A stretch of 64,000 nucleotides of DNA from Epiperipatus broadwayi (Eukaryota; Animalia; Onychophora), in contig JAQFVV010000009.1 of NCBI GenBank assembly GCA_028023455.1, positions 11,284,001 to 11,348,000 of the forward strand, given 5' to 3'. Positions 1 to 33,860 of this stretch are shown piece by piece. Both the position numbers and the translations under genes were made by a program. How positions within the stretch are numbered: the stretch's first letter is position 1; each line of letters opens with the position of its first letter. The notes below the pieces were generated by a model that made no database searches, had not been told where the DNA came from, and worked only from the letters and a program-made list of their open reading frames with translations.

Positions 1-2353
1 ATTTGATGTTCTTTTAAATTATGCATCTCACTTGCTATTTTGTGTTCTCTACCCATCTCAGTGACTGCGATGTATGCTATTGGGTACTGACTAAGCTTAT
101 CAGCCACAATGTTCTCCATTCTGTGGCAATACACTACTCTGTAGTCAAACTCCTGCAGGAACAAGCTCCATCTCAACAACCTATTATTAGCCAGAAAACT
201 ATGATTAAGGAACTCAAGGCTTCTGCGGTCAGTCAATACCACAATCTCTGAACTGACCAAGTATTGCCAGAATTTCTTGAAGACCCATATTACCACAAGA
301 GCCTCCTTTTCTGCAACAGTATAATTAAGTTCCAGGCCTTTCAGCAAATGGTTAATAAACACAGGATCCTGTGTTGACTCCCTTCCTGTATTTGGAACAT
401 CATGGCTCCTAACCCAAACCTGCTACTATCGGTTTGTATGAAAAATGTCTTGGTGAAGTCTGGATAGGCCAACATAACTGTTTCTAAGAAGCCTGCCTTT
501 ACTCTTTGAAAGCTACGTTCTTGTTGTTCCTCCCATATCCATGGTGTTTCCTCTTTCAGCAAATGTAATAGTGGCTCCATGTGCATTGGGAATCCTCTAT
601 AGAATCGATTATAGAAATTACACAAAACCAGAAAAGATTTAATGTGTTTTCTGTTCCTAGGAGTAATGATCTTCTCTGGGTTTGGTATTATTCCCTTCTC
701 ACTAATGACATGGCCCAGGAATCTGACTTCCATCATCATTATGTGACTTTTGTTTAAATTAATCCTGATGCCTTTCCCTTTACATTCCTCCAGGAATCTT
801 TCCACATGTTTGAAATGTTCCTCAATGTTTTCAGATGTGATGACAATGTCATCCACATATACCACAATAAAGCTCTTTATCTTATCATCTAATACCTGAT
901 CCAAATATCGTACAAGCCCTGCCCCACTATTTCTCAGTCTGAATGGTATTGTTCCCTTCTCACTAATGACATGGCAGAGGAATCTGAGTTTCCATTGTCA
1001 TTATGTGACTTTTGTTTAAATTAATCCTGATGCCTTTTGCTTTACATTCTCCAGGAACCTTTCCACATGTTTGAAATGTTCTCAGACGCGATGACAATGT
1101 CGTCCACATATATCACAATAAAGCTCTTTATCTTATCATCTAATTCCTGATCCAAACATCGGACAAGCCTGCCCCACTATTTCTCAGTCTGAACGGAATC
1201 CTATTAAAATTTGTATGCATGTCCATCATATTGAAATGCCGTGTATTTCTGATCTTTAGGATGTAGTTTGATTTGCCAGTAACTGGCCATCAAATCGAAT
1301 GTTGAAAATATAATTTTTCCTTTAAATCTTCTGAGTACATCACTTATAGGGGGTGGAGCATTAATGTCTGGAATAGTTATTTTATTTAGGTGCTGTGCAT
1401 CTAAACATAATCGGATAGATCCATCCCCTTTTTTCACAGTCACGATAGGATTATTAAATGGGGATGAACACTTTGAAATAACCCCCATTTGAGCATCTTA
1501 TCTATCTGCTCCTCAACTTCTCACTTATATTGGTATGGTATTGGGTAAGTGCAAGACTGATATTGCTGGTCCTCCATGAGTCTTATTCTATGTTTGTAAC
1601 CTTGAATGACCCTAGGGACTTCTGAGAATACCACATTATTCCTCTCTAGAATCTCCCTCAGCCTATCCCTCTGGTTATTGTCTAGCAATGTTGATTCACC
1701 CACTATATTTTCCCATTCTACCTCCATTAAGGTGTTCTGTGCAAGAATTTCTCCCTGATAATTTTCTCTATCATCTTGGTTTTTTTCACAAAACTCAGCC
1801 AGGTGTCATTTATCTCAGCACAGCCCTGTTTGTAATTCAGTATGCACCCACCTTATACATAAAATCTGAACCTAATACAATGTCATGAATCAAACCATCC
1901 AACATCGCCAATACATGGACAAACTTTTCTCCTGCAATCTCTATTCTTATGTAGACCTGTTGAAATGCTAGCTTTACCCTTTTTTCCATCAGCCAACAAC
2001 ACCTGTACTGTTTTTAATGGCAGCATCCTGAGCTCCAGGCAGCTGTTCTTTAATCTACCAAATGTTTCCTGAGACATTATAGAGATCTGACTCCTTGAAT
2101 CGAAGAGTGCATTGATCAAAAGCCCTTCCACCTCAATCACCAATATTGGACATATCTGAAGAGCCATCTCCAATGTTTCTCTCCCTTTCTCATATCCTAG
2201 GTTTGCTACTTGCACCTGATGATGTTTTCCACTTCCTTTGGCCCCCTGAAGCTGTATTGGGTCTCTACTGTGGTCCAAGGCAGTCAAGGTTTCCACCATC
2301 TGTTCCACCAACTTTACATGCCACCCTTTGTGCCACATCCCAAGGTAAGCCAT
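1..2353 (-). pseudogene. pol: Gypsy pol (protease-RT-RNase H), disrupted
   Basis: ORFs 1883-2353, 1521-1727, 1204-1488 and 341-904 plus my translation of 1-340 (ELNYTVAEKEALVVIWVFKKFWQYL...TDRRSLEFLN...RWSLFLQEFDY...NIVADKLS) give consecutive pol motifs. Confidence 0.92.
683..1196. repeat. ~260-bp tandem duplication inside RT, including the YVDD motif
   Basis: 683-943 and 944-1196 are collinear copies that differ by small indels and CpG transitions. Confidence 0.9.
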
Positions 2354-2399
2354 GTCTGACTATCTGCATAATATGCTGCTCAGAGAGTGGCAATGAAAG

Positions 2400-3415
2400 A
2401 ATTTTTGTAAATGATTCCCCCAGTCTCCATTTTTCCTGTGTTGTCTGGTGCTAAATGTTTTCTTGGAGTTCATCACCCCAATAACTGGCCATCAAAGCTT
2501 TATAATATTCTGCAAATGTTGTGGGCTTATGGAACAGTAAGTTCCACCACACTTGTGATTTGCCCTCCAAATGTCTACAGGTGACCCCTATCTTGGCCTC
2601 CTCATTCATCCTGCTGAACTTGAAATATTTTTCAAGGCTCCTCAAGTGCTCCATGGGGCTTTTTCCTGGGTGTCCAGAGAAGACTTGTATCTTTAAGAAC
2701 TGATGGAACCCAATAGGATTATCTACGTGATTTCTGTAGCCCCTGTTTATATATCATCCAGTGGCTCTTGGTTTGATGTCTTCTACTTCTGTGTTTGCAT
2801 TGTTACTGGCTGAGCTTGTCCTCTCTTCAAATTTTGACTCTAACCTTTCCACTATTCTTTCTACCTGACTTATGTCTCTCTGCATATTCGCCAGCATCCT
2901 ATTATTTTCTAATCTCATCTCTATAAATTCCTTCTCTTTATCTAACTTCCTTATTTCCACTTCCAGCTGCCCTATGTCTACTCTCGGATCTGAATATGCT
3001 GACCTTATCTCTACACTCTCTGCCCTATCTAGTTCCTCACACTCATATGGTTCTATGCTTTTTTGTTCATCCAAATTGATTTCCCTGTCCTGTCCATTCC
3101 CTGTGTCCTTTGCATCTGATTTCTTGGGGAAGTTACTCCTCATTTCTTCTGTGGCTTCAGCAATTCTTTTATTATTCTCCATTGCTAACTTTGCACACCA
3201 TTCTTCCATCTTCTTTCTTCCCTGTCCTTCTTTTTCTTCATGAACTGCTGTTGCTCCATTCTCATTTGCATGATCATATTCATTATATCACCAAAGTTTA
3301 TTTTATATTTCACTTCCCTTTGTGTAATATCCCCTGCATCCCTCTCCTTATCCTCATCCATTTGTCTCACTTCATTTACTTGATTGTCCATTTTAGTTTG
3401 GGACCTCATATGCAT
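2400..3415 (-). pseudogene. gag: Gypsy gag, disrupted
   Basis: ORF 2451-2654 (HLRSLEKYF...EAKIGVTCRHLEGKSQVWW...YWGDELQENI) fits the retrotransposon gag capsid pattern. Charged coiled-coil ORFs 2754-3209 and 3185-3415 lie upstream. Confidence 0.75.
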
Positions 3416-6900: not shown

Positions 6901-9900
6901 TAGCATTTAATAATACTTTAAATTGCCCTTAGTAATTCCATAATTAATAATGCTTTATTTTATATTTCGTCCTTATTGAAGAGAACAAAAATTACCCGCA
7001 TTTCTGTCCTTCTATTCAATTTAAACAGAAGTAGCTTACATTTTATTTCCTTAATTTTAAAATACATATTAGCTCCAGAAATAGCAAATAAATGAATACT
7101 GTTATCTCCTTATGATGAACTTAAACATAGTATGATCTATCAAAATAGACATATCCTTAAGTCTATGTATAATCTTCACAAAGAACACTACATGAAAAAT
7201 AGTGAGAAATTAAAATATATTCTATAGAATAGTTCTGCATGCGTTTTCCATATATATCAAAAAAAATACATTGCTTAATGATACAACAATAATATTTATG
7301 TAAACCATTCTTATTTAAAATGGCAATTAAATGAAATAATGTAGACTGGACATTATTAACATACATTTTTAAAAAAGTAATAGTTATAAAGGGATTAATT
7401 CAGAAATGTTTAAATCGAAGAAAGTTAATCAAACCGACGTACCTTTTTTTTAAAACCTTAGAATTGCATTTTTTTAATTAATTTTTTCCATAATAAAGTT
7501 CTTAAGCTCCTTTGGAAGTTTTACTCTAAAGGCTTTTCAAAGTCAATTTGACTTCAGTAACTGGCTTTAATTTTTACAATACATGAACCACTGTTTACTG
7601 TCTACAATTACATTACAAAGAGCAAATTTTACACTGGAAATATTTTTTTTTTTAAAAAAAAACCCTCTTTAGTAAAGTTCATTTGCCTTTCCCCAAGGTT
7701 ACTCCCATGCATCTTGCTAACTAACTAATTACATATGCAAAAACAAATCTTTTCAAAAAAAAAATCATTTTGATTTTTAAAACTAAATGAAGACAAGAAA
7801 AAAAAACAAATAATAAAATAAATAGCTTTTACAAACTCGAAAGAAAAATGAATATTAATTAACTATCAAATAAAAATGATTAATAATTTATTCAATTTGT
7901 AAAATAATTCATTGATCTAACTATCTATTAATCATTGGAAAGAAATATATATTTGTTAATTATTTAAGTTAACTACTGTAATTTAAATGTTTTTATTGTG
8001 AATGTACTATTGTTTGCTGTTATTAAAGATGAAAAAGAAATGAAACATAATGCAGAATCATACATGCATACACATGCACTACAAGCTATTTATTGAACTA
8101 TCTTAACTAAATATAATTGAAACTGCTATTAACTGTTAACAAAAGGATAAGAATTAATGAATAAAGGATATTTGAAACCATTCAAATAATATTATACTAA
8201 CACGGGATAACATTGCATCTTTCCAACAAGATGTATCAATTCCACTAATAAACAACCCCCCTTCCTTACATTAAATACCTCATTAACTACAATAATACTA
8301 ATAAATACTTATAAAGTGGTCAGTAAACTGCATAAGCAATTCATATTTAAGCCTTAAACAATCTCCAGCAAAAAAAAATTAAAATTCCAAGGCTATTTCA
8401 TTTTTTTTTAAATAAAATATAACTATTTATTTAAGATACAAAGTATCTTAAACCCTTGTGTCCATTCAGATGGCCACAATATATATTTCAACTTCCTAAT
8501 ATCCTATGTTACACACTCTGTTTGTACTTTATTAATCACTTTATTATTGCAGCTATGAAATCATACATACGTTTATCTTTTAATTTAACTGAAATACGCG
8601 ACTATTTTAGAATCACACATATATTTCCTTCAACTTAACTTACATATGCGACTATTTTTATTATTCATAATTAAAACCTTCCTGAAACTTTATTTTATTC
8701 CACTGGACATAAACACTTTATATTTAGTTATCAGCAGTTACATCTAGATAATCTATCTTTGATCACTATAATTATATTTGAATACTTTTTTTCTTACATT
8801 GAATACATCACACGAAACTCCAAAAGCTTTCTTGATATTAAAATTTCCCTCCTTCTTTCTATCCTTTTTACACATTTGACGTCAAAATACATATATAAAG
8901 TATTACAAAGCATGGAAAAAAATTTTATCCCCTTCGTCTTTGCTCCTCATCACTCTGATTTATTAAACGAATTATATATATATATATTTTTAAATATTTA
9001 CTTTATTTTACACAAATTATCCAACACGTGATTACCAATTGCACAGCAATAATATCCTGGAATGGCCCCAAAATGTAATGGAAAGACAATTGAAAGACGT
9101 TCCTTTTTATTTATATATAATACGGATTCTTAAATTCAAATCATCCACCTTCCATTACCAGAAGCAAAGAGAACATATGGACATAAACAAATTCATATCC
9201 ATACTTGACTGAACCTGGGACCATACGGATATTTCCCCAGGTTATCTTTCCTGGTCAAACATCTCTCGACTGTTGTAATTATTAAAGAATTATAGCGCTT
9301 GAATAAATTATAAATTTAATGATATCGGAAATGCCGTACAACTAGCCTCATGTGTTACTTAGTACTCAAAATGGAGTAATAATTCTAACCCAAAACCCTC
9401 CGGGTATATTAACTATTTGAAATGGCGAAGAAACAAGACGAAACAGACAAAATAATTAAGGAACATTTAATATAATAAATAAATAACAAAAAAGAAATCA
9501 ATTGAAATATTTACATACAATAAAAAAAATCATTTAGATATAATGCTACGATTAAGTGTATGGGTTAAATTCTACAAACGATTATAATTTATTACAATAA
9601 ATTATCCATTAACAATCGTCATTCCCAATATTAGAAAGAGTCTAATTAGTGTCTATCTCATGAATATCTGGGATTTGCAATTGCTTTAAATCAAAAGTAT
9701 GTGCACATGTGTTCTATATAGGTGTGTTATGTAATTTACCTAGGTTTTTCTTCTTTTCTGGCGTGAGTGAATGTCCTGTTGACCATCATGTGGAATTCCT
9801 CCCCTTTTTGCAGAGACGGTTGCTCTTAGGCTTGGATTTGGTTTGTGGAATCTCTTCTTATGTCTGTAGTGACTTCTCCATACTAGGACATCAAGGGCAT

Positions 9901-10447
9901 GGAAGGCGGATCATCTGGCGGGTGCTACACCGGTAGTTGTTACATGGCGAGGTGACCATATGAGCACGATGGGTCTGAATTGACCAGCGATTGTGATGAC
10001 CCTTAGCCACACATCCTTGAAGCTTCAGTTATGTTGTAGATTATTTTCATGTTCATACAATGTTCAGTATTCTACGGCAAGGTCCTTATACTCAGCTTTC
10101 TGGATTTTTTTTTTTTGCAAAATTTTAAAGGATTTTCATGTCTTCTTTCTACTATATTCTAATCTGCTTCTTCTCAGAGCAGTGTCTTCACTGAAGTCTC
10201 TACATGAACTGTCTTGAATTAATTCATTAATGTCTTTTTCAAATTCTTTCATTATCTTGATCTTTTTGTTTGTTGCTTTTTTTTCACACCTTTCACTTTA
10301 TGATGCCTTCAACAGCTTATACAAATTTACTTTTTTCATATAATTTCATAGCAATATTTTACATTTATTTATTATTTATTTTCTTTCTTTTTTTAATAAA
10401 ATTATTTTCATTTGACATACTTTAAACATTGCTCTCTTTATATGTAT

Positions 10448-10625
10448 TTTCACACATGCAGTTCGTTTTTGTCAAAATGTGTACTTTTTTTAGAATAGAT
10501 CTTTATTATTTGTCACATTTTAAATTCTATTTATACATACTTTCACACATGCAGTTCATTTTTGTCAAAATGTGTACTTTTTTTAGAATAGATCTTTATC
10601 TTTTCTCACATTTTAAATTCTATTT
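10448..10625. repeat. ~90-bp tandem duplication
   Basis: TTTCACACATGCAGTTC...CACATTTTAAATTCTATTT occurs at about 10448 and 10541. Confidence 0.85.
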
Positions 10626-11018
10626 CTAATCTTATTTGAACTCCTCAATTTTTACTTTTTTTATAAATCATTTTAAGTTCCTATTTCATTTATATTTCTT
10701 TTCTCACTGTTGATTTTAAACCAAATATACGATTTCAATATTTTCTAACTTTACTTCTTATATTTTTCAAAATATAAACTTTGGAGGGGAAAAGATAAGT
10801 AATTTGTCCGATTCTATTTCTCTCTCTTTTATTTTATTACGGTAATTAATTACGACATTTTCTTTCCTCATTTGCTTAATTCTTTTATTCATTTGTTTTT
10901 TTTTTCTATTTCGAAAAGAAAACTACAATATTTAATATTGTCTAATATTAAATACATACATGTGTGATCACAGTATGTGCGATCATCACAATATATATAT
11001 ATTTTATAAGGGATTTGT

Positions 11019-11056
11019 CAATCTATCTTATACAATTGATATGCATTACCACATAC
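11019..11056 (-). mobile_element. 3' tail of a PLE hammerhead repeat, displaced by the 8.3-kb insertion
   Basis: The reverse complement of 11019-11055 matches 19669-19705 at 33/37 nt and is the collinear continuation of the arm that stops at 19395. Confidence 0.8.
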
Positions 11057-11410
11057 TGAAGCAGTTGGATCTGAGTTCGATTTTAGCTTCATGACATCTA
11101 GCCATAAGACCACTTCAAACTCTAGTACTAACCTTAAATTTCCAATGCAATGGGACTTTATACATCAATCCATGCTAATTTCCATAAAGAATAACTTATT
11201 TCATAAATGTGTATTCAAATAACTAGTTTCAGATTTAAATTGATTAATTCTATTAATAGATTCATGATAGAATGATTCATGAATTTATATATTATAACTG
11301 CGTGGATTGTGCGTATATATTTGTAAATATTTAAATATATATAATTGTTTGAAAGTTTCATTGCGTCGGGAGTGTTTGATTTTATTTTAAAATAATTTAT
11401 TAAAGTTTTA

Positions 11411-11810
11411 ATGATTAAAAGCTACATTCTTTAGACAAGCTTTCAGATTCTCCCTTTCCAAAAACAATAGTTAAAGTTTTATTAATTAGAAAAAAAGATA
11501 AGGATTTCCTAATTGAAATCATTTTCTGATTTTAAGAATTCATTTTCTAATTAGAAAATGGATTCAAGTTAATGAGTTTGAAAGCCTTATCGAAGGAATG
11601 TATCTAAAAACAACCAGTAAATCTAAAAACATTGATAATGAAAGAAGTGCTAGCCTGAAGGCATCAGAGGACAGTATATATAGCTCTGAAAAGTTTGTAG
11701 AAGAGAAGCCATCTTTGTTGTAGAGAAGTGCAGTAAACTCGGTGCATTTTAAATAGTGTTTCGATTATGGTGAAGGGCTAGACCATCAGGAATCTGGCTA
11801 CGGTTCCTGA
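11411..11810 (+). pseudogene. Decayed intronless ORF of unknown function inside the repeat (second copy at ~17012-17412)
   Basis: Reconstructed MIKSYIL.DKLSD.PFPKTIVKVLLIRKKDKDFLIE...WIQVNEFESLIEGMYLK...GLDHQESGYGS*, needing frameshifts and stop read-through. Confidence 0.4.
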
Positions 11811-12149
11811 AGCCCTTTGAGAATCTTCAATGACGCTGCTAAATTCTTTCCGGACAAATCAGGCTGCCAAAATCAAATAAAATGCTGTTCAAGTAATAAA
11901 TCAAATGTTGCCTACATTTTACCAACTCAGACGTGTAACCTAAGGAGCCCAGCCTGGAAGAAATGGGTAATATATTTCTATAATGAATCTTAAACTTTCT
12001 GGCCAGTTCCGAACTTTACTTTACACTTCCTTTAAGAGCTCTTCTCATTTATAATGTAATAATACTCTGTGTAAAACCTTTTATTTATGCTATTTTAACT
12101 TTCATAGTAATTCTCTCAACCTCTAGTCTTTAACTTTCCTTTCTTACAT

Positions 12150-13300
12150 GGCGGTTCATTTATTTTATTATGTATATTTATTGAGTAAATTTATTAATGT
12201 TGTTATTTTTAATTATATGCCAATAATCCTTCGACTCGATGATCTCCTTCATTTTCTGTGCGTTACACAAGTAATATAAACTTAATTCTGAGAGTTAATT
12301 CTTGCCCATTAGAACTAGATTAATACAGTTCTATCAATCATCGAGTCGAAAGAAATTATTAATGTTTGTTATTTTTATAATTGGCTAATAATAAATTATT
12401 AGCTCCGCTTCTAATCTATGCCTCAGCTATTTTCTTGTATTCACCAATGTATTTATTCATATATAATATTAAAATGTTTTTTGCAAAAGGGCCGATAAAG
12501 GAATCAAATAAATATATTCTAATTCAACTTTGTTATTTTCTATTAAGATTCAGGAAGGGCATGATGATTGGGGCATAATTAATATGATTTACAAATACTT
12601 TAAAATAATGTTAGTTAAAGCTCGTTTGACTTTAATTCATTTGATCAAGTCATCACATAGAGCATTCTATAATTGGGTTTTATTTTCCAAACAGTGACTA
12701 TCAAGTCATCATCTTCAACATTGCTGGCGTAGGCTATCGTTCGTTTCACATGCTTGTCGATGATAATATTTCTGTTATTTTAAATTATCGAGGAAGAAAG
12801 CACTTCCTCTCCTGTTCATGATATCTTTGGAACACCAAAGGTTCGTAGTTACAACTCGGCCTGGCTTTCCATGTTCCACATCTACGTAAAGGGCATAAGA
12901 CTTGTCAGATGCAAGCCGCCATCCCGTCTTTCAATTTATTTTATAGCTCATAATTCGTCAGCACCATTGCCTCTCTGTTCCAGTAAACTCCGCTCTGATG
13001 CTCGTAATTCATGACGAAGTGATTTCAATTAAAGTCAAACAAATTCTCAGTTATCTCAAATTAAATAAGTTTTCCAATAAAGTTTAAAGTTATGCCCTAA
13101 AATACATATCTTGCTCTTCATGAATGGATTTGCGAATGTGAAAATAAATATCACATTCTTTCGTATAAAATTAGAGTAATAATGTCCTTTACTAATGAAT
13201 ACCTTTATCTGCCTTTTATTTCTTGTTGGGGGCATAGACATAGACTTTCAAATATTGCGTAATATTCATTGGCATATAATAAGGACCGCCACTCTTATTA
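12150..13300 (-). pseudogene. Two adjacent decayed intronless ORFs of unknown function, virus/Maverick-like (second copy ~17750-19000)
   Basis: Manual translation: LLYANEYYAIFESLCLCPQQEIKG.RYSLVKDII...ECDIYFHIRKSIHEEQD, then NHFVMNYEHQSGVYWNREAMVLTNY...DDSWSIIEVPWRLASDKSYALYVDVEHGKPGRVVTTNLWCSKDIMNRRGSAFFLD...RNIIIDKHVKRTIAY...DLIVTVWKIKPNYRMLY. Composition is protein-like; the family assignment is unverified recollection. Confidence 0.55.
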
Positions 13301-15799
13301 TAATTATAAACTATGTTAAAGTCTAGAGGTGATTACTATAATCATTATTTAAAATTCAAACAAAACAAATTATTATTATTAAATATTTTTTAAACACACT
13401 TGGTTTCTTAGTTCTTAATTCTTTCATAATTATTTTAATGTTAATACTCGCTATCTGTGTTGGCAACCCGAACATATACATATTATTTGACTTAAAAGTA
13501 TTTTAAGTTAATTAATTATCCAATATTAGTGTCAGTTCAGAGGTCTCTAATCCTCACCAACCGTTGAGCTAGTTTCTTGGCGCATAGCATTGTGTCGTTG
13601 ATTTCTACTAATCTGAGCTAGTGAGTTGGGTCTGAATTCAGTTTGGTTCAGCTGATTTTGGATCCGACTTGCATTTAGGTGGTGGTGTTTTTTCGACTGG
13701 TACATGGTATGTTTTGGCTGCCCAATCATTGGAGCTCGATTTAATAAACCCCACACACCCTGTAGATAATAATTATGATCTTAGTTACTCAGTCAATTGA
13801 GATCTCAATAAATTAAATGTTTCAGTAGAAAGTGATATTTTTATAGAATGTTATATATATTTGAAGAAAAGTTATGCGATTTATAACGCATAACTGAAAT
13901 GATTTAATAAATTAAAATGTCATTTTGTAATTTTCTTTCTTATAATTAAATGTTTTCAAGATTATTTTTTTTAAATGCTCAGTCAGTAATAGAATTTGTT
14001 TGTTAAATTCCATAATAGTACTGTTAGTCAGAATAATTAGTTAAATATAGGTATAATTAATTATACGTGTACTATATCAGCATATATACTTTACGTCTGT
14101 TTATACGCGTTTGTGACAGTAGGAAAATTATCGTTAGAAAAGTAGTGAGGGCAGCTCAAAGCAAGGGATAAAATAAATGAAATATTTTGTCTGTGTCAAA
14201 ATTAATTATATTCATCTCAGTTGTTATGATGTAAAATATCCAATATGATATCATGTTAAAATTTTTAATGTCAAAATATTGCTTGCTAGCACATATATTA
14301 AATGTTCGCTCAGTATTCCTAGTAGCCTCAAAGCAGGCAAAGACCTTTAAACTGGGAATTATCTGTCAAGCGGTCCAATGCAGTGTGACAATATGCTCTA
14401 ATGACAGTCTTTTCTAGAGTAACCTCAAAGCAGGTGAAGACCTTTTGTCTAACACCAAGCAGCCAGATACAGTTGGCAAAATGCTTAGATTGTTTACACG
14501 CTTTCATGCTAGCAAGACTCAAAATGATATCAACAAATAAAAGTTCTTGTGTAATATTAATTTTGACATTTTTTTCTGTGTGTGAAAGCCTCATGCTTAG
14601 TGAAAATAATATTTGAACTCCTATATTTAAACTCAGGTCAGGAACACGTTAGTTATTAATAAATAATAAATATTCATCAATCGAATTGTTTGATCAAAAA
14701 TTAAGTCAGTCATATGTGGTTTGTGGGTCAATGGGTTATTTCATTGCCCTATTGATCTCATTTTGCTCACTGGTGCCCATATAAATAAATTTGTCAGCAA
14801 AATCTGATTGTCAGCACAGTAGTGGTTTAGTTGTCTAAATAATAAAAACCAAATGTGTCCTATACAGAGAATTAATTGTACTACCTGCTAATATATATGT
14901 ATATTAATATTTGTATATCACTAATCATTTGTATAGTTTTTTTTTCCAGACATGGGAGAACAGTTGAACAGAGGGAAAGTGAGTAATATTGTTTTTCTTA
15001 TCTTTAATAGTTTTTTTAAATAAAATACATGTCTCATTCAAAGAATTAATAGAAAGAGCTAACCAAGAAAACGTAGGTAAACTAAAACTAAACTAAAAAA
15101 GGCAGATTACATAGATTGGGGAAATAATATGCAGCAGCTAATGAAAATAAGGACAATGGGACCAGTAGTCAGAGACCTAATTAATTGTACTAAAGAAAAA
15201 AGTTATTATTGAAGTATTCAGAGAAAGAATGCCATAAGCTTGTGATTCACATTGTTTATTTATAGTATTTATTTATGTTCCAAAATGGAAAGAGAGTGAT
15301 TAGATAAAGTATTGCCTGATGATAGTGACATGCCTTCAACCACCTCCAGTGAATGAGAGATCACTTTTAAAAATCGGATCAATAGGAAAGAACACAACCA
15401 TCAAAGCAGGAAGACAGCTAAAGAAGATCACAACGATCGGGAGACTTTGCATACGATCCTCAGAGAAATGAGAGAAGACAGAAAGTTAATGCTGATGATG
15501 ATGGAAATGATTTTAAAGCTTGAGGAAACATGAGGGACCCAAACCAACCCAGAGATTGCACAGCATCCTCAAGCAATGGACACTTACAAAGCTCCAAGAG
15601 GAGATGATGATCAGACCACACCAAAAAAAGTTGTGGACAGCAAAGAAGATGACAGTGAAGAAGATGAGTCAAATCAAGAAATGGTGGAAGAAGCTGATTT
15701 AAATACAGACAGGGAAAAGATGTTCAGACCACTAGTAAAATAAAACCAAAAGTAGAAATGGAACAGAAGATAAACCCCGAAATGAGTCTAAGGAACTTG

Positions 15800-16330
15800 C
15801 AGAGACCATCCCTTACATCTTGTGTGGAAATTCAAATTTTTAGGGGAAGCCCAGGAGAAAATCCCATAGATCATATAGACAGCATTAAAGAATTTTTTGT
15901 CTGCACTCTGTAGCAGAAAGGGAAAAGATTATCATAGCCAGCCATTACTTAAGAGACTGCCAAGGCATGGTGGAAGCTATTAAAAGACCCATCTACCATG
16001 ATCCAAGGGTATGAAAACGCCATTTTAAAAAAATATTGGAGTGAAGAAAGTCAGGAGGGTATTTTGCATAGACTGAACACACAGAAATATCAAGAAAACT
16101 GCAGACAGGGATACGCAGCCTACTTCATCCAGCAAGTAACCACATTCAAATCCCTCACAGCCTTCAAATATGAGGACCATCACATCATCCAGATGATCAG
16201 GCATCATTTACCCCCATGGATCCAAAGAATCATGCTTGGGATGTGCCCTATGTCACTAAAAAAGACCATAGACTTTTTGACTGCAATAGACTATGGGAAC
16301 TTGACACCAACCAGAAAAGACCAAGACTAA
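15800..16330 (+). pseudogene. gag: Gypsy-type gag remnant
   Basis: GKPGENPIDHIDSIKEFF...EREKIIIASHYL...AKAWWKLLK...YENAILKKYWSEESQEGILHRLNTQKYQ; homologous pattern to the gag at 2451-2654. Confidence 0.8.
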
Positions 16331-16658
16331 GACCATTATCAAAAGTTAAAACCATATGTGCCACCTGATCCGGGGAAACAATAGGACAACCATTAAATGA
16401 CAGATATATATACAGACGACTGATTGGCATGACCATAGGGAAAATGAGACTTGATTAACGGACCTTATTATAAGCTAGATATTAAAAAAATGATCGCAAT
16501 GAGACATGTATAATTTTGAAGTTTGTATAGATGATATTATTCACGCTCATGCTGTTCTCCCAGAGTCTACCAACTAGCCGAGTACACTTATGCGACTGTA
16601 TTACGTATAAGTAAAGAGATTTTTTTTTCATTGTTTTTTTTTTTGAAGTGAAAAGAAA

Positions 16659-19394
16659 TGAAGCAGTCAGATCTGAGTTTGATCTTAACTTCATGACACC
16701 TAGCCATAAGCCCACTTCAAACTCTAGTACTAACCTTAAATTTCCGATGCAATGGGGCTTTATACATCAATCCACGCTAATTTCCATAAAGAATAACTTA
16801 TTTCATAAATGCGTATTCACATAACTAGTTTCAGATTTAAATTGATTAATTCTATTATTAAATTCATGATAGAATTATTCATGAATTTATATATTATAAC
16901 TATGTGGATTGTGCGTATATATTTGTAAATATTTAAATATATATAATTGTTCGAAAGTTTCATTGCGTCGGGAGTGTTTGATTTTATTTTTAAATAATTT
17001 GTTAAAGTTTTAATGATTAAAAGCTACATTCTTTCGATAAGCTTTCAGATTTTCCCTTTCCAAAAACAATAGTTAAAGTTTTATTAATTAGAAAAAAGAT
17101 AAGGATTTCCTAATTGAAATCATTTTCTGATTTTAAGAATTCATTTTTTAATTAGAAAATGAATTCAAGTTAATGAGTTTGAAAGCCTTATCGAAGGAAT
17201 GTATCTAAAAATAAACCAGTAATTCTAAAAACATTGATAATGAAAGAAGTGCTAGCCTGAAGGCATCAGAGGACAGTATATATAGCTCTGAAAAGTTTGG
17301 AGAAGAGAAGCCATCTTTATTGTAGAGAAGTGCAGTAAACTCAGTGCGTTTTAAATAGTGTTTCGATTATGGTGAAGGGCTAGAACATCAGGAATCTGGC
17401 TACGGTTCCTGAAGCCCTTTGAGAATCTTCAATGAAGCTGCTAAATTCTTTCTGGACAAATCTGGCTGCCAAAATCAAATAAAATGTTGTTCAAGTAATA
17501 AATCAAATGGTGCCTACATTTTACCAACTCGGACGTGTAGCCTAAGGAGCCCAGCCCAGAAGAAATGGGTAATATATTTCTATAATGAACCTTAAACTTT
17601 CTAGTTCCGAGCTTTACTTTACACTTCCTTTAAGAGCTCTTCTCATTTATAATGTAATAATACTCTGTGTAAAACCTTTTATTTATGCTATTTTAACTTT
17701 CATAGTAATTCTCTCAACCTCTAGTCTTTAACTTTCCTTTCTTACATGGCGGTTCATTTATTTTATTATGTATATTTATTGAGTAAATTTATTAATGTTG
17801 TTATTTTTAATTATATGCCAATAATCCTTCAACTCGATGATCTCCTTCATTTTCTGTGCCTTACACAAGTAATATAAACTTAATTCTGAGAGTTAATTCT
17901 CGCCCATTAGAACTAGATTAATACAGTTCTATCAATCATCGAGTCGAAAGAAATTATTAATGTTTGTTATTTTTATAGTTGGCTAATAATAAATTATTAG
18001 CTCTGCTTCTAATGTATGCCTCAGCTATTTTCTCATATTCACCAATGTATATTTATTCATATATAATTTTAAAATGTTTTTTTTGCAAAAGGGCCAATAA
18101 AGGAATCAAATAAATATATTCTAATTCAACTTTGTTATTAAGATTCAGGAAGGGCACGATGATTGGGGCATAATTAATATGATATACAAATACTTTAAAA
18201 TAATGTTAGTTAAAAGCTCATTTGACTTTAATTCATTTGATCAAGTCATCATGTAGAGCATTCTATAATTGGGTTTTATTTTCCAAACAGTGACTATCAA
18301 GTCATCATCTTCAACATTGCTGGTGTAGGGCTATCGTTCGTTTCACATGCTTGTCAATGATAATATTTCTGTTATTTTAAATTATCGAGGAAGAAAGCAC
18401 TTCCTCTCCTGTTCATGTTATCTTTGGAACACCAAAGGTTCGTAGTTACGACTCGGCCTGGCTTTCCATGTTCCACATCTACCTAAAGGGCATAAGACTT
18501 GTCAGATGCAAGCCGCCATGGGACTTCGATTATCGACCAGCTATCGTCTTTCAATTTTATTTTATAGCTCATAATTCGTCAGCACCATTGCCTCTCTGTT
18601 CCAGTAAAGCCCGCTCTGATGCTCGTAATTCGTGACGAAGTTATTTCAATTAAAGTCAAACAAATTCTCAGTTGTCTCAAATTAAATAAGTTTTCCAATA
18701 AAGATTAAAGTTATGCCCTAAAATGCATATCTTGCTCTTCATGAATGGATTTGCGAATGTGAAAATAAATATCACATTCTTTGAAAGTCTATGTCTATGC
18801 CCCCAAGAGTGGCAGTCCTTATTATATGCCAATGAATATTACGCAATATTTGAAAGTCTATGTCTATGCCCCCAACGAGAAATAAAAGGCAGATAAAGGT
18901 ATTCATTAGTAAAGGAAATTATTACTCTAATTTTATATGAAGTATTGTGTAATATTCATTGGCATATAATAAGGACCGCCACTCTTATTATAATTATAAA
19001 CTATGTTAAAGACTAGAGGTGATTAATATAATCATTATTTAAAATTTAAACAAAACAATTTATTATTATTAAATATTTTCTAAACACACTTTGTTTCTTA
19101 GTTCTTAATTCTTTCATAATTATTTTAATGTTAATACTCCCTGTCTGTGTTGGCAACCCGAACATATACATATGATTCGACTTAAAAGTATTTTAAGTTA
19201 ATTAATTATCTGATATTAGTGTCAGTTCAGGGGTCTCTAATCCTCACCAATCGTTGAGCTAGTTTCTTGGCGCACAGCACTGTGCCATCGATTTCTACTA
19301 ATCTGAGCTAGTGAGTTGGGTCTGAATTCAGTTTGGTTCAGCTGAGTTTGGATCCGACTTGCGTTTAGGTGGTGGTGTTTTTTCGACTGGTACA
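16659..19394 (+). repeat. Right terminal direct repeat (LTR-like), 2736 bp
   Basis: Same start and end as the left repeat. Carries an extra inversion/duplication at about 18781-18985 and about 25 bp at 18520-18545 that the left copy lacks. Confidence 0.9.
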
Positions 19395-19464
19395 ATACAT
19401 GTGTAAAAGATAAATAATCTTCAATATATGTATTTCATGCTGAATCAGTACTCATCAGTAGGTC
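19395..19464 (-). ncRNA. Degenerate hammerhead, interrupted at its cleavage triplet
   Basis: GGACCTA CTGATGA GTACT-GATTC-AGCAT GAAA TACAT...ACATGTAT, then the 8.3-kb insertion. Stem II has a mismatch and stem III is broken by CpG decay. Confidence 0.5.
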
Positions 19465-19601
19465 CAGATCACCATCTTTTACATGTATATACAATGAGTG
19501 CTCAGTTTATCTTAAGATAGCAAATCTTTAAACTTTAATACAAACTGATCTTAATATAAACTGAGCACTGACTGTATATATGGATGGAAGATGATGATCA
19601 G

Positions 19602-19677
19602 GACCAACTGATGAGTGCTGATTTAGCATGAAATATGTATATTGGAGATCATTTATTTTTTACACATATATGTGGTC
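19602..19677 (+). ncRNA. Type I hammerhead ribozyme motif (PLE-associated)
   Basis: Stem I GACCA.A/T.G.TGGTC; core CTGATGA (19608-14); stem II GTGCT-GATTT-AGCAT; GAAA (19630-33); stem III TATGT/ACATA; triplet ATA with the scissile bond after 19670. Confidence 0.6.
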
Positions 19678-22248
19678 ATGTGTATCAGTTGTATAAGATA
19701 GATTGGGTACACATAGAGAGTTTAAAGTTCGAGTTCAAGCCATCTAAAAATAACATTGTTTAATATATATATATTGAACCTGTTCATATATGTGTATACG
19801 AAACACCGGTCTCTTAGGCAGAGAAGAACATACTCGGAGAGTATGTATGCCCCAACGATAGCTATAAAATATATAACTAGCGTTACATTTCCAGGACATA
19901 ACTTCTTCTCGGCTGTTGAGTTCAACACCAATTTCAAAGCACCTTTTTTTGTTTGTGTATAAACACGGGCGCCAGCTATCTATTCAAGGATGAATAAATA
20001 ATGCACTTTGAGCAATGGCCACTAACCCAACGCCTAAATCCACGACTAGCTCAGCTGTTTGTAATCACTAATAGATTATACTTAATTAGTGATTAAAAGA
20101 ATTAATAAAAGAATTTGTTAAAAAGAATTGATAAAAAGAATTGACCGACAAATATAGTTTAATTTTAAAGATAATTTATTAACTAACATTTATTTACTAA
20201 ATTTAAACATTTTATAATTCTAATAAAACACACGCATATTTTAAATTAACATTTCTAAATAGTTTAAACATTCCTATAGATTTAATAACAAAACATTCTA
20301 ATTTAACTAATAAATATTGATATAATGACCACGCACATATTATCTCATGCACACACATAATAATGATAATAAAGGACTACATAGCATTTGAAATTTAATC
20401 ACACACATATCAATAGTTCATTTATGTATGATATCGAGTTCATATAATTAGACTCTTGGAGAATTCGCATGAATTAATGAAATGCAATGGCTATTACAGA
20501 ATAAACGAAAATAAGCAAATGTTTTACCTAGGATTTTGAACATAGATTTAACACTTTGTTTTCTTCTTGTTTGTTGTTTCTTCCAGTATGAATGGTTCCA
20601 GTATGAATGCTTCCAGCCAGCTGGGATGTTTCCTTGCTGAGTTTCCTGATTTTCACGATTATTGCTATCGGAGACAAATAGATACTGATGGAGATTTTCT
20701 AAGATGTTAAGCTGACATTATTTCACGGGCAGGTCTGCTGTTTTCTCGGATATCTGGGCTGGAGGTGAACGTGCGTTCCAAAATATTCTCAGCACTGAAT
20801 TTTGTTTCTTAACTGACTCAATTAATTTCCGAACTGCACTCTCTCAATAACTTTGTGAACTGAACTCACTCAATTAATTTGTGGAATGAATACTGTCCGA
20901 TAAAAAAAAGTCTATTTATACCTGCGCCTTGTTGTCTTTCTGATATCTCCGGCAAATATCTGTTGTCGAATTGATAATCATTTGATAAACGTGTTTTGAA
21001 AGATTGCTTAATTAGTAATAGCCATGCAAAAATGTATTGTTTTATATTAATTAATATCTAATAGCCATTGCCATGTTTTTTAATGATAATCTTCTTTAAC
21101 TTTCACATACATTTTATATATTTACAAATGTACATATATACGCACATATATTTTTAATACAATTTACTATTTAGTTTTAACATTATTTTTTCTTTAATTA
21201 AAATTGAATGAAAAGAAATTTGTATGTTTTAACTTTTTCAAATTATATTTTTACGAATACTAACAAAAACTCTTTACTTCCTTTTACAACCCTTAGTTTC
21301 AGTTCTCAAAGCAAGACTCCCCCTCCCCCCTTTTGACTAATCAATTGTAGTTAGTTTTATTTCAAAAACTAACGCTAGAAAACTATTTAATTCTTATTTT
21401 TTTCGAAAACAAGCTGCAATAAATTCTTCAACATTTAATTTTATGTTTTTCTTTTATGAAAGATTACTTTAATAATAATTTTAGATAAAAATTATATGTG
21501 CCTATATCAATATAGGTACAATATATATATATATAATTTTTAAATACTAACATAAATAAAGTTTTCCAAAGGTTTATCAAGATAGCATTGTATTTACAGC
21601 TATATATTGGACTATTTCCATCCTCTAGTTGAATTGATGTGTTTTTTAAAAATCATCTGACTCTGTTTATACTTTACAAATATATCAAGCTTTTAATAAT
21701 GTGACACATCATAGTATAGAATAAAACGTTTTAAATGTTATTACTCTCGTCTCTTACTGGTATGACCAGTGACAATACTAGCATGGGAATTGAACTGATG
21801 ACTTAGATTCATTAATACTGATTTTAAGGTAATGCTGTAATCAACTAGGCTTTCCCACACAAGGCATCAGTTCAATAGAAAATTTAGGTACTTATTTATG
21901 AGGATTACTTTTATTTCTCCATTTTTTTGAAGACAAGATTAATAAATTTTCTAAATATTATGATTTATTACACTAAATTAATGTATGAAGTTGTTTGACA
22001 TTATCGTTTAGTAAATTTATTTAAATCTTCTTTTTTCTATTTGTCTCTGTTCAATATTTTTGTATTTCTCATTTGAGATGCATGTTCATTTGGTAGATGC
22101 ACTTAATAATATTAATATTTTGTAGAAGAACTATCTGTATTGTTATTTCTATTATAGCTTTAAAAATGAAAATGGACGGTAAAATAAAGAAACAAGTTTT
22201 TATTATGTCACTCACTGCATGAGATGGAAATTATTTATTTTATTTGTG

Positions 22249-22299: not shown

Positions 22300-23741
22300 T
22301 AATGCTAAACAGCATACTAATCGAATTACAGGCATTCCAGATCTACTCAGGAGATTTAGAGATGTGCCAGATTTTTATGCTAAAATGAAGTGGGAATTTA
22401 CAAGTTGGATCCCTCTAGTATTCAGAATGTGTCCAAGTAATACTTATATAAGTTATAAAAGTGGTGTTAATGTTAGGATAGACGTAGCATTATTAGGATT
22501 TGATTAAATTTAATTGGAAATGAGGAAATATAACTTATATTTTTAAGGGACAAGCTTGATTCTGTCTAGTTTATTTGGGGAGCCATGAGAATTTTTCCTG
22601 CTCAGATGACTGATATTTTCATTCATGAAACCCTCTGAGGAGACAGTTTGTGCCAGGTTAACATATCCTATTGTTACCACTTTCATTACACGGAGAGAAT
22701 ATCATTTGAAATAAATAAATATGATATGGGGGGGGGGGGAGTAACATGATAAAACTGAAAATGTAAATGGCTCTGATTGTATAATTTTTAGTGCTAATAA
22801 TGTAGAACTAGTCAAAGTGGCTTATATTAATAATCCATATTCAATCATCTCTGAAGAATATTTTAATATCATGGTGAATCTGCACAGTGCATTAATATTG
22901 GAAGGCTTAAAGAAATGATCAATAAATCTTAAAAATTTAAAGCAACAATATGGCTGGGTGAGACATATCTTTTGTTTTTATATGAGCAAGTTACTCCTAA
23001 CAAAGACATAATGGCAATCAGCAATGCTTATTTTGCTAAACTGTGTGATTTTATTACATTGCATTTACCTTCAAGTTTTCCTGTAAAAATAGAAATTCCC
23101 TTATTTCATGTTCTAGATGCTCATATCATTTTTGGAAATATTTATGGTAATGAGGAATCAGTATCTAATGTAACTCAAATAAGTGATAATGCACATCTAA
23201 TAATGTGTATCGTTGATGAGAATGCACTTGAATTCCTAAGGGGTACGCAAGTCTTGGTGATGCTCATTGACATTTTCATGATAAGGATAATAAACTTTTA
23301 CAGTTTGCAATACTGTAAAATCTTCTGGAGAGTGGCACTGAAGATGATCAGATGACTAAATAGAAATCTTTGACAAATAAATGTGCTGCTTCTTTATGAG
23401 AAAAAGAATGGCTTATGCAGAGACCTGTTCAAGAAAGTTTACTTTCAAACCAGTCATGTGATTTTAATTATCAGATAGTAATGTTGACTCTGCGTGCATA
23501 AATATAATGGCTGAACATCTCAAAATGGTATTAGAGTTATAATATGAAAGAGAAGAAGAGCGAAAACATAAAGAAGAGGAAGAAATGCTAGAAAAAGTTT
23601 TACATTTATCACTTACAAAAAAGTAGTATTCATTTCTAGCTTGATAGGTATAAGGATTATACTTATGAAAATTGTTAGAACTTGATTTCAGTATTTATTG
23701 TGTACAATAAAAGTATGGACTGTATTTAAAACAACAAAAAC
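22300..23741 (+). pseudogene. ANKRD13: Processed pseudogene of an ANKRD13-family gene (GPCR-chaperone domain plus C-terminal UIM-like tail)
   Basis: [36 protein letters not shown]...[10 protein letters not shown]; KFKATIWL; EQV...[35 protein letters not shown]; EEEEMLEKVLHLSLTKK* (TAG 23624-26). No introns; stops and frameshifts; AATAAA near 23707 and an A-rich tail near 23729-41. Confidence 0.92.
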
Positions 23742-33459: not shown

Positions 33460-33860
33460 TCAATTCAAATTCCACGAATCTTGTATTTTAATGTTAGCAG
33501 CTTGTCTATTTATTAAATGCATTTTATTCCTATTTATAAAAATTGCCTTCTTAATTTTTCTTTTATTATGGTTTCTCTCTTCATAAAGAATTTTCACATT
33601 TTCAAAATCAAATTTAAATTTATACTTACATGTTTTTTCGTGATCAAAGAAAACTGAAGGAGACATTAAATCACCATTATTTTTAGTTTTTACACGCTTA
33701 TATAACAATTCATGCTCTCTCAATCTCTTCTCAATACTGCACCTAGATTCACCTATTATGATAGCATACAATCACAAAAAAATTGATATATGACATTACT
33801 TTTCTGCTTGACAGGTATGACATCCTTAAAATTATTGATTAATTTATTAATATTGTTTAG
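33460..33860 (-). mobile_element. PLE GIY-YIG endonuclease fragment
   Basis: KDVIPVKQKSNVIYQF.CDC...IGESRCSIEKRLREH...FDFENVKILYEERNHNKRKIKKAIFIN...INR...W. Confidence 0.88.

Follow-up and report, generated by a model that had tools for sequence, protein, structure and literature searches.

Are the two long direct repeats on this Epiperipatus broadwayi contig (JAQFVV010000009.1) made of captured coding DNA, or are they the LTRs of a retrotransposon of a familiar kind? A sequence-only reading had favored the former and described a non-autonomous gypsy derivative whose LTR boundaries were redefined inside captured DNA. I analyzed the window, which is the whole stretch of 64,000 nucleotides in which the repeats lie. 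The description of a pol-less, Ty3/gypsy-type element inserted as a single unit stands, but the redefinition of LTR boundaries in captured DNA does not. Very probably, the element is an old, dead Ty3/gypsy (Metaviridae)-type LTR retrotransposon with LTRs of about 2.7 kb that are otherwise ordinary, and it was inserted once with a 4-bp target site duplication (TSD). It has the direct repeats, the TG...CA termini with a short inverted repeat, the TSD with an empty site, and the polypurine tract (PPT) of LTR retrotransposons, and it is a further example of this known kind, without a sign of captured genes in its repeats.

The 5′ LTR (11057-13704, 2648 bp) and the 3′ LTR (16659-19394, 2736 bp) are direct repeats on the plus strand, each starting with TG and ending with CA. 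The whole element is 8338 bp in length, of which the internal region accounts for only 2954 bp. This anatomy was read directly from the repeat ends, where the terminal sequences TGAAGCAGT and ACTGGTACA form the inverted match at 7 of 9 nucleotides that had been claimed. The repeat borders are sharp, and the unrelated flanking sequences diverge immediately beyond both ends. The BLASTN identity between the two LTRs is 94.7-94.9% (about 94-96% overall), and the K2P distance is 0.058 overall (divergence K ~0.04-0.06). Outside a single rearranged patch, the pair has 93 differences (~3.8%), and the gaps in ~2.6 kb of aligned LTR sequence amount to 12 events, the largest being 88 bp. The patch (18783-18941 of the 3′ LTR) holds a 137-bp segment that runs in the opposite orientation to its counterpart at 13160-13296 in the 5′ LTR, and extra duplicated sequence in the patch explains the 88-bp length excess of the 3′ LTR. 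LTRs of 2.7 kb are at the long end of the range for animal elements; in Belonocnema kinseyi, an element with a distantly related gag has LTRs of 353 bp. Ulysses of Drosophila virilis, a Ty3/gypsy element, has LTRs of ~2 kb and a 4-bp TSD, and the plant Ogre elements also have long LTRs. In features, as distinct from sequences, the element resembles Ulysses and Ogre in its multi-kb LTRs and TG...CA ends, and Ulysses also in its 4-bp TSD, whereas those elements are autonomous with a pol and the present one is pol-less.

How did the element arrive at this site? The tetranucleotide ATAC is found on both sides, at 11053-11056 and at 19395-19398. The target is a host palindrome (19399-19705 plus 11019-11056) with arms of ~160 nt and a loop of 29 nt, whose hairpin has a z of -15. 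Once 11057-19398 is removed, the joined flanks align without gaps to the opposite palindrome arm, which serves as a paralogous empty site. Because the two arms become collinear again in this way, the element is one integrase-type insertion, with an exact 4-bp TSD, into one arm of the host palindrome. It is a tidy paralogous empty site, in which the intact palindrome arm proves the single insertion. The sequence-only reading had correctly noticed the TSD and the restored collinearity, but the sequence restored is the palindrome, and the claim that it is the tail of a Penelope-like element (PLE) is unsupported. The PLE tail was rejected as the host sequence, as neither a reverse transcriptase (RT), a confirmed GIY-YIG domain, nor a hammerhead is found near the site. 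The search for RT near the insertion site covered ORFs of at least 62 aa, and the window as a whole has no match to any Rfam family, hammerheads included.

The same evidence bears on an alternative in which a 5.6-kb unit was copied about 1.5 times by local tandem or segmental duplication, or in which the repeats are an assembly artefact. The constant spacing of ~5.6 kb and the single copy of the element in the window would suit such an origin, but it would leave unexplained the exact 4-bp TSD with the restored palindrome arm, the TG...CA ends, the PBS-like and PPT-like sequences lying exactly at the inner repeat borders, and the sense gag between the repeats. The ~4-6% divergence of the repeats also speaks against an assembly in which they were collapsed or duplicated. 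This alternative is contradicted by the site and by the repeat ends, and it is extremely improbable. When the element was compared with the window by blastn at low stringency, only AT-rich alignments of 58-65% appeared, and these were treated as compositional noise. Conserved LTR 27- and 31-mers had no exact match in a metagenome contig collection, and the 27-mer had none in a prokaryote genome contig collection.

The inner borders of the repeats carry a TGG on one side and a purine tract on the other, in agreement with the earlier description. Directly 3′ of the 5′ LTR, TGG occurs at 13705 and opens a putative primer-binding site (PBS; 13705-13722, plus strand, TGGTATGTTTTGGCTGCC), which is assigned by its position and the TGG only. 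The sequence of the PBS occurs once in the window, at the site itself, and no tRNA gene was found by ARAGORN within the window; the 3′ extension of the putative PBS is not known to resemble common nuclear tRNA 3′ ends. A PPT (16645-16658, plus strand, GAAGTGAAAAGAAA), in which 13 of 14 residues are purines, adjoins the start of the 3′ LTR. The two repeats were probably generated by normal reverse transcription, with minus-strand priming at the PBS and plus-strand priming at the PPT, and the element was integrated once into the palindrome arm via an integrase-type reaction, giving the 4-bp target duplication. An LTR ending with CA followed by a PBS beginning with TGG is the canonical arrangement. 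The CA|TGG sequence here is a normal LTR/PBS junction for which a special explanation is needless, although it had been derived from the YHVP codons of a captured gene.

Do the LTRs nevertheless contain captured genes? It had been proposed that the element is chimeric, that its LTRs consist of foreign coding DNA or of another element's gene array, and that the repeat end was redefined by cryptic priming at TGG. The proposal drew on a minus-strand frame crossing 13704/13705, which is indeed open, for 43 codons in the frame originally described and for 77 in another. Against dinucleotide shuffles, however, neither the local maximum at the boundary (P=0.14) nor the longest ORFs of the LTRs (P=0.45-0.61) exceed chance length. 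No homologue and no Pfam match was found for the 77-aa boundary ORF. The twin frame in the 3′ LTR (19240-19434) stays open for 13 codons into the unrelated host flank; a frame crossing the LTR boundary therefore carries no information. A period-3 scan gave z=3.3 for 13555-13854, 300 bp straddling the boundary, but this stretch was selected post hoc, and the open frame itself gives rise to the signal, which is not independent evidence. The scan is also underpowered, as it misses even the known gag as well as parts of the neighboring pol. The 5′ LTR is without detectable coding or RNA-family content; tblastx of the LTRs against the rest of the window revealed no similarity, and no Rfam family, 5S included, matched anywhere in the element even at E<=1. 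In short, the LTRs have neither detectable homology to a protein or RNA family nor an ORF beyond chance. With a chance-length frame as its sole evidence and a canonical CA|TGG at the junction, the capture of a gene, and with it the cryptic priming, is highly improbable. It is just as improbable that the LTRs derive from acquired element or gene DNA that has decayed past recognition, with the U5/U3 borders inside it, in a mobilized animal family. Cassandra TRIMs, whose LTRs carry 5S rRNA-derived sequence (bioRxiv 10.1101/2023.07.14.548913), are one well-known case of captured cellular sequence in LTRs, the kind that had been proposed here. Unlike Cassandra, the present element yields no such match.

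What does the internal region encode? A leader or unassigned sequence without recognizable coding (13723-15356, ~2 kb, plus strand) may include the N-terminal part of gag, which is poorly conserved and would have decayed. A minus-strand frame of 106 codons within it (14331-14648) is marginal (P=0.03 against dinucleotide shuffles) and has no Pfam match. The leader is followed by a gag remnant (15357-16378, plus strand), in which a charged region (15357-15740) and an Arc/Ty3-like capsid domain (15770-16378) lie in two different frames, with three in-frame stops in the latter; the gag homology covers 15770-16378 within a single frame. The gag query by itself had no direct Pfam match, and a word-index protein search with a piece of it found nothing either. 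A phmmer search gave 63 matches at E<=1e-3; Retrotrans_gag was matched by 17 of 26 members of the gag family, members of which also match Arc_capsid_dom and Ty3_capsid, and, in the PDB, the family profile matches the Arc capsid (E=1e-8). The sense-strand gag claimed earlier is, as judged by these homologies, a genuine but broken Ty3/gypsy (Arc-like) capsid. By tblastx, it resembles the gag region of another Ty3/gypsy-like element, which bears RT and RNase H (RH) and lies at window positions 3-3287 on the minus strand. The word-index search with the RT piece of that neighbor gave matches of at most 45% identity. Two loci (L001 and L002) of the best gag match, P0001, were considered as a comparable LTR element and rejected, since P0001 is a multi-capsid-repeat protein.

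The absence of pol was likewise observed directly, as had been claimed. None of 113 open frames of at least 34 aa matched Pfam, and tblastn with the protease (PR), RT, and RH of the neighboring element gave no match in the element even at E<=10; PR, RT, RH, and integrase (INT) are all absent. The PR-RT-RH-INT order and the RT phylogeny that define Ty3/gypsy pol are lacking here, and the clade is not assignable from pol because the element has none; the Ty3/gypsy assignment is suggested by gag alone. When was pol lost? In its present form, the element could have moved only if an autonomous relative provided the missing proteins in trans. I lean slightly toward a loss that preceded insertion, the copy having arrived as a LARD- or TR-GAG-like non-autonomous element. 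This is mildly favored because decay in place, as seen between the LTRs, consists of small indels only (<=88 bp). Less probably, an autonomous Ty3/gypsy element was inserted and then lost pol by one large in-place deletion, never having been mobilized non-autonomously. The copy is old (K ~0.04-0.06), and the gag homology stops at 16327-16378, ~270-330 bp before the PPT, where pol would begin, both of which fit such a deletion, but the LTR-to-LTR indels are all small.

For a copy pol-less at insertion, two groups of non-autonomous elements are comparable. As far as the summary of Kalendar et al. 2004 in PMC4350172 goes, LARDs come from plants and are defined by the lack of internal coding capacity. 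The element resembles them, as so summarized, in being >4 kb, in its long LTRs, in having a putative PBS and a PPT without pol, and in its presumed trans mobilization by an autonomous partner; in contrast to these non-coding plant elements, it retains a recognizable broken gag and resides in an AT-rich animal genome, in keeping with its gag relatives and the nearby ANKRD13 exon. TR-GAGs (PMC4350172) are plant elements of <4 kb with an intact gag ORF. The element shares with them gag as the sole coding region and the typical LTR and PPT features, next to a putative PBS, but its gag is broken and, owing to the 2.7-kb LTRs, its 8338 bp exceed the 4-kb limit of that group (PMC4350172).

Gag-only, long-LTR non-autonomous elements have been described mostly in plants to date. 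If genome-wide copies share the gag-to-PPT junction, the element would be an animal example of them. The locus itself has little importance beyond annotation, in which it should be masked as an inserted LTR retrotransposon. An ANKRD13-type exon of a host gene is found at 22.9 kb, and the insertion lies upstream of or inside that gene.

The element at 11057-19394 is a real insertion, an ordinary LTR retrotransposon of the Ty3/gypsy type that has long LTRs, lacks pol, and has decayed. The window around it is AT-rich (about 22-38% GC) and eukaryotic in character, and retroelement remnants and one ANKRD13_C exon were found in it. The 5′ LTR (11057-13704, 2648 bp) and the 3′ LTR (16659-19394, 2736 bp) can be aligned end to end with 94.7-94.9% identity (K2P = 0.058 overall; 93 differences, about 3.8%, when one rearranged patch is left out), and the similarity breaks off abruptly at all four repeat ends. 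Both repeats start with TG and end with CA, with a 7/9 match in the 9-nt terminal inverted sequence, and ATAC is found on both flanks of the element. TGG lies directly 3′ of the 5′ LTR, and the 3′ LTR is directly preceded by a purine tract (13/14 purines). The direct repeats, the termini with their target site duplication, and the TGG and purine tract had all been proposed in the sequence-only reading, and each was borne out.

The insertion site is a host palindrome (11019-11056 plus 19399-19518, versus 19548-19705), and the element interrupts its left arm. The two arms of about 160 nt match at about 85% around a 29-nt loop (DNA hairpin z = -15). When position 11056 is joined to 19399, the alignment to the other arm is gap-free across the junction. 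Thus, the intact arm serves as a paralogous empty site; it is proof of a single insertion event that left an exact target duplication of 4 bp. It had been claimed that deletion of the element restores the tail of a Penelope-like element; the single insertion stands, while the target is a palindrome and not demonstrably such a tail. The palindrome may be a foldback or MITE-like element. A 93-bp tandem repeat (2.1 copies, 10433-10625) lies near it.

The internal region of 2954 bp has a single recognisable coding remnant, on the plus strand. Its 125-aa open piece (15953-16327) gave no match in a word-index protein search; a full phmmer scan gave 63 matches at E<=1e-3 (best 6e-14); identity is about 30%, and the matched proteins have lengths of 81-1227 aa, most of them between 300 and 760 aa. 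Only one match carries a name, an uncharacterised protein from the gall wasp Belonocnema kinseyi. Aligned with the query, the matches form a conserved family, with invariant residues at W6, W29, and Q34 of the query. Against the PDB, a profile of this family matches the Arc capsid with E=1e-8, and Pfam assigns Retrotrans_gag to 17 of 26 members, Arc_capsid_dom to 11, and Ty3_capsid to 2. By tblastn of the family, the capsid homology extends over 15770-16378 in one frame, which confirms the proposed sense gag. Since this frame holds three in-frame stops and the charged upstream part (15357-15740) lies in a different frame, the gag is broken.

In agreement with the earlier claim of a missing pol, no protease, RT, RNase H, or integrase was detectable in the element: the 113 open frames of at least 34 aa in 11000-19450 have no meaningful Pfam match (best E = 0.006 among 113 queries), and tblastn with the PR, RT, and RH pieces of a neighbouring element gave nothing above noise at E<=10. 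In structure, the element is a non-autonomous LTR retrotransposon of a LARD-like or TR-GAG-like kind, as these classes are defined in PMC4350172. However, it exceeds the size limit of TR-GAGs because of its long LTRs, and, unlike a strict LARD, it keeps a gag. LTRs of several kb are known from Ty3/gypsy elements, Ulysses and Ogre among them. The element that holds the distant gag relative in B. kinseyi is 6.5 kb long and has LTRs of 353 bp; thus, long LTRs are not common to the whole gag lineage. That element (CM021346.1, locus positions 9327-15804; LTRs 94% identical) encodes XP_033227933 as an intact ORF of 537 aa, with no other ORF of at least 150 aa and no tblastn match to the pol pieces of the window; it is a possible further case, in an insect, of an LTR element with gag only. 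P0001 (673 aa; ENA metagenome contigs, L001 737-7585 and L002 7855-12022), the best of the gag relatives, has three tandem capsid-like domains. Genes beside it (260 and 300 aa) carry further capsid-like copies, which brings the 300-nt unit to five copies (65-100% identity); these loci hold gag-capsid domains in an array and do not obviously amount to an LTR element. The protein collections searched contained no close relatives of the window's proteins, nor did LTR k-mers match the DNA collections searched.

The sequence-only reading further held that the LTRs consist of foreign coding DNA, with the repeat end inside a captured gene. This depends on a minus-strand frame across the boundary 13704/13705, which has 43 open codons; a second frame there has 77 (13550-13780). 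Against dinucleotide shuffles, the longest frames of LTR1 (76 codons, P=0.61) and LTR2 (84 codons, P=0.45) are at chance level, and that of the boundary region has P=0.14. The 77-aa frame has no Pfam match and no homologue in a 5.8-billion-protein index, which is not very sensitive. Its counterpart at the 3′ LTR end (19240-19434) reads on without a stop for 13 codons in unrelated host DNA, so crossing a boundary is uninformative on capture. Over the 300 bp centred on the boundary there is a period-3 signal (z=3.3); this segment was picked post hoc, the open frame alone would predict such a signal, and the method misses the positive-control gag. The LTRs have no tblastx similarity to the remainder of the window. 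A Cassandra-like captured RNA gene is excluded, since Rfam, searched up to E<=1, matched no part of the element. It is textbook organisation for an LTR to end in CA and for the adjoining PBS to begin with TGG, and the PBS and PPT define the repeat borders in reverse transcription; borders redefined within captured DNA need not be invoked. The chimeric interpretation is not supported, and the foreign coding DNA was an over-reading.

A second, unrelated Ty3/gypsy-like element (3-3287, minus strand) runs off the window start. Its RNase H (3-422), RT (344-997 and 1207-1497), protease-like piece (1886-2359), and gag (2454-3287) are all broken into separate frames, and its gag is similar by tblastx (33-40% aa) to that of the element studied here. 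About 3.5 kb downstream of the latter, on the same strand, is a host exon (22933-23181, plus strand; Pfam ANKRD13_C, E=6e-27, profile positions 222-303); the element may lie in an intron of this gene or upstream of it. A 103-aa open frame (33463-33771, minus strand) resembles by eye the GIY-YIG nuclease motif of Penelope-like elements, with no Pfam match at E<=0.05. One open frame of at least 62 aa outside 11000-19450 matches Pfam Ion_trans (E=2e-4).

These analyses show that a retroelement with the order LTR, TGG at the PBS position (13705-13722), gag, PPT (16645-16658), and LTR was inserted once through a 4-bp staggered cut. It would have been copied by ordinary reverse transcription, more likely than not with the enzymes of an autonomous relative. 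Alternatively, pol may have been deleted after insertion. This seems less likely; the indels between the two LTRs are all at most 88 bp, which mildly favours a pol-less state at insertion. The copy is old and dead, as the LTR divergence of 4-6% and the broken gag indicate. The LTRs differ in length by 88 bp because sequence in the 3′ LTR was locally inverted and duplicated (patch 18783-18941), where a 137-bp segment (18805-18941) has the opposite orientation to 13160-13296 of the 5′ LTR. With its short duplicated flanks and 47-nt inverted repeat (18805-18851/18940-18986), the patch resembles the product of a post-insertion rearrangement, either by template switch or mediated by inverted repeats.
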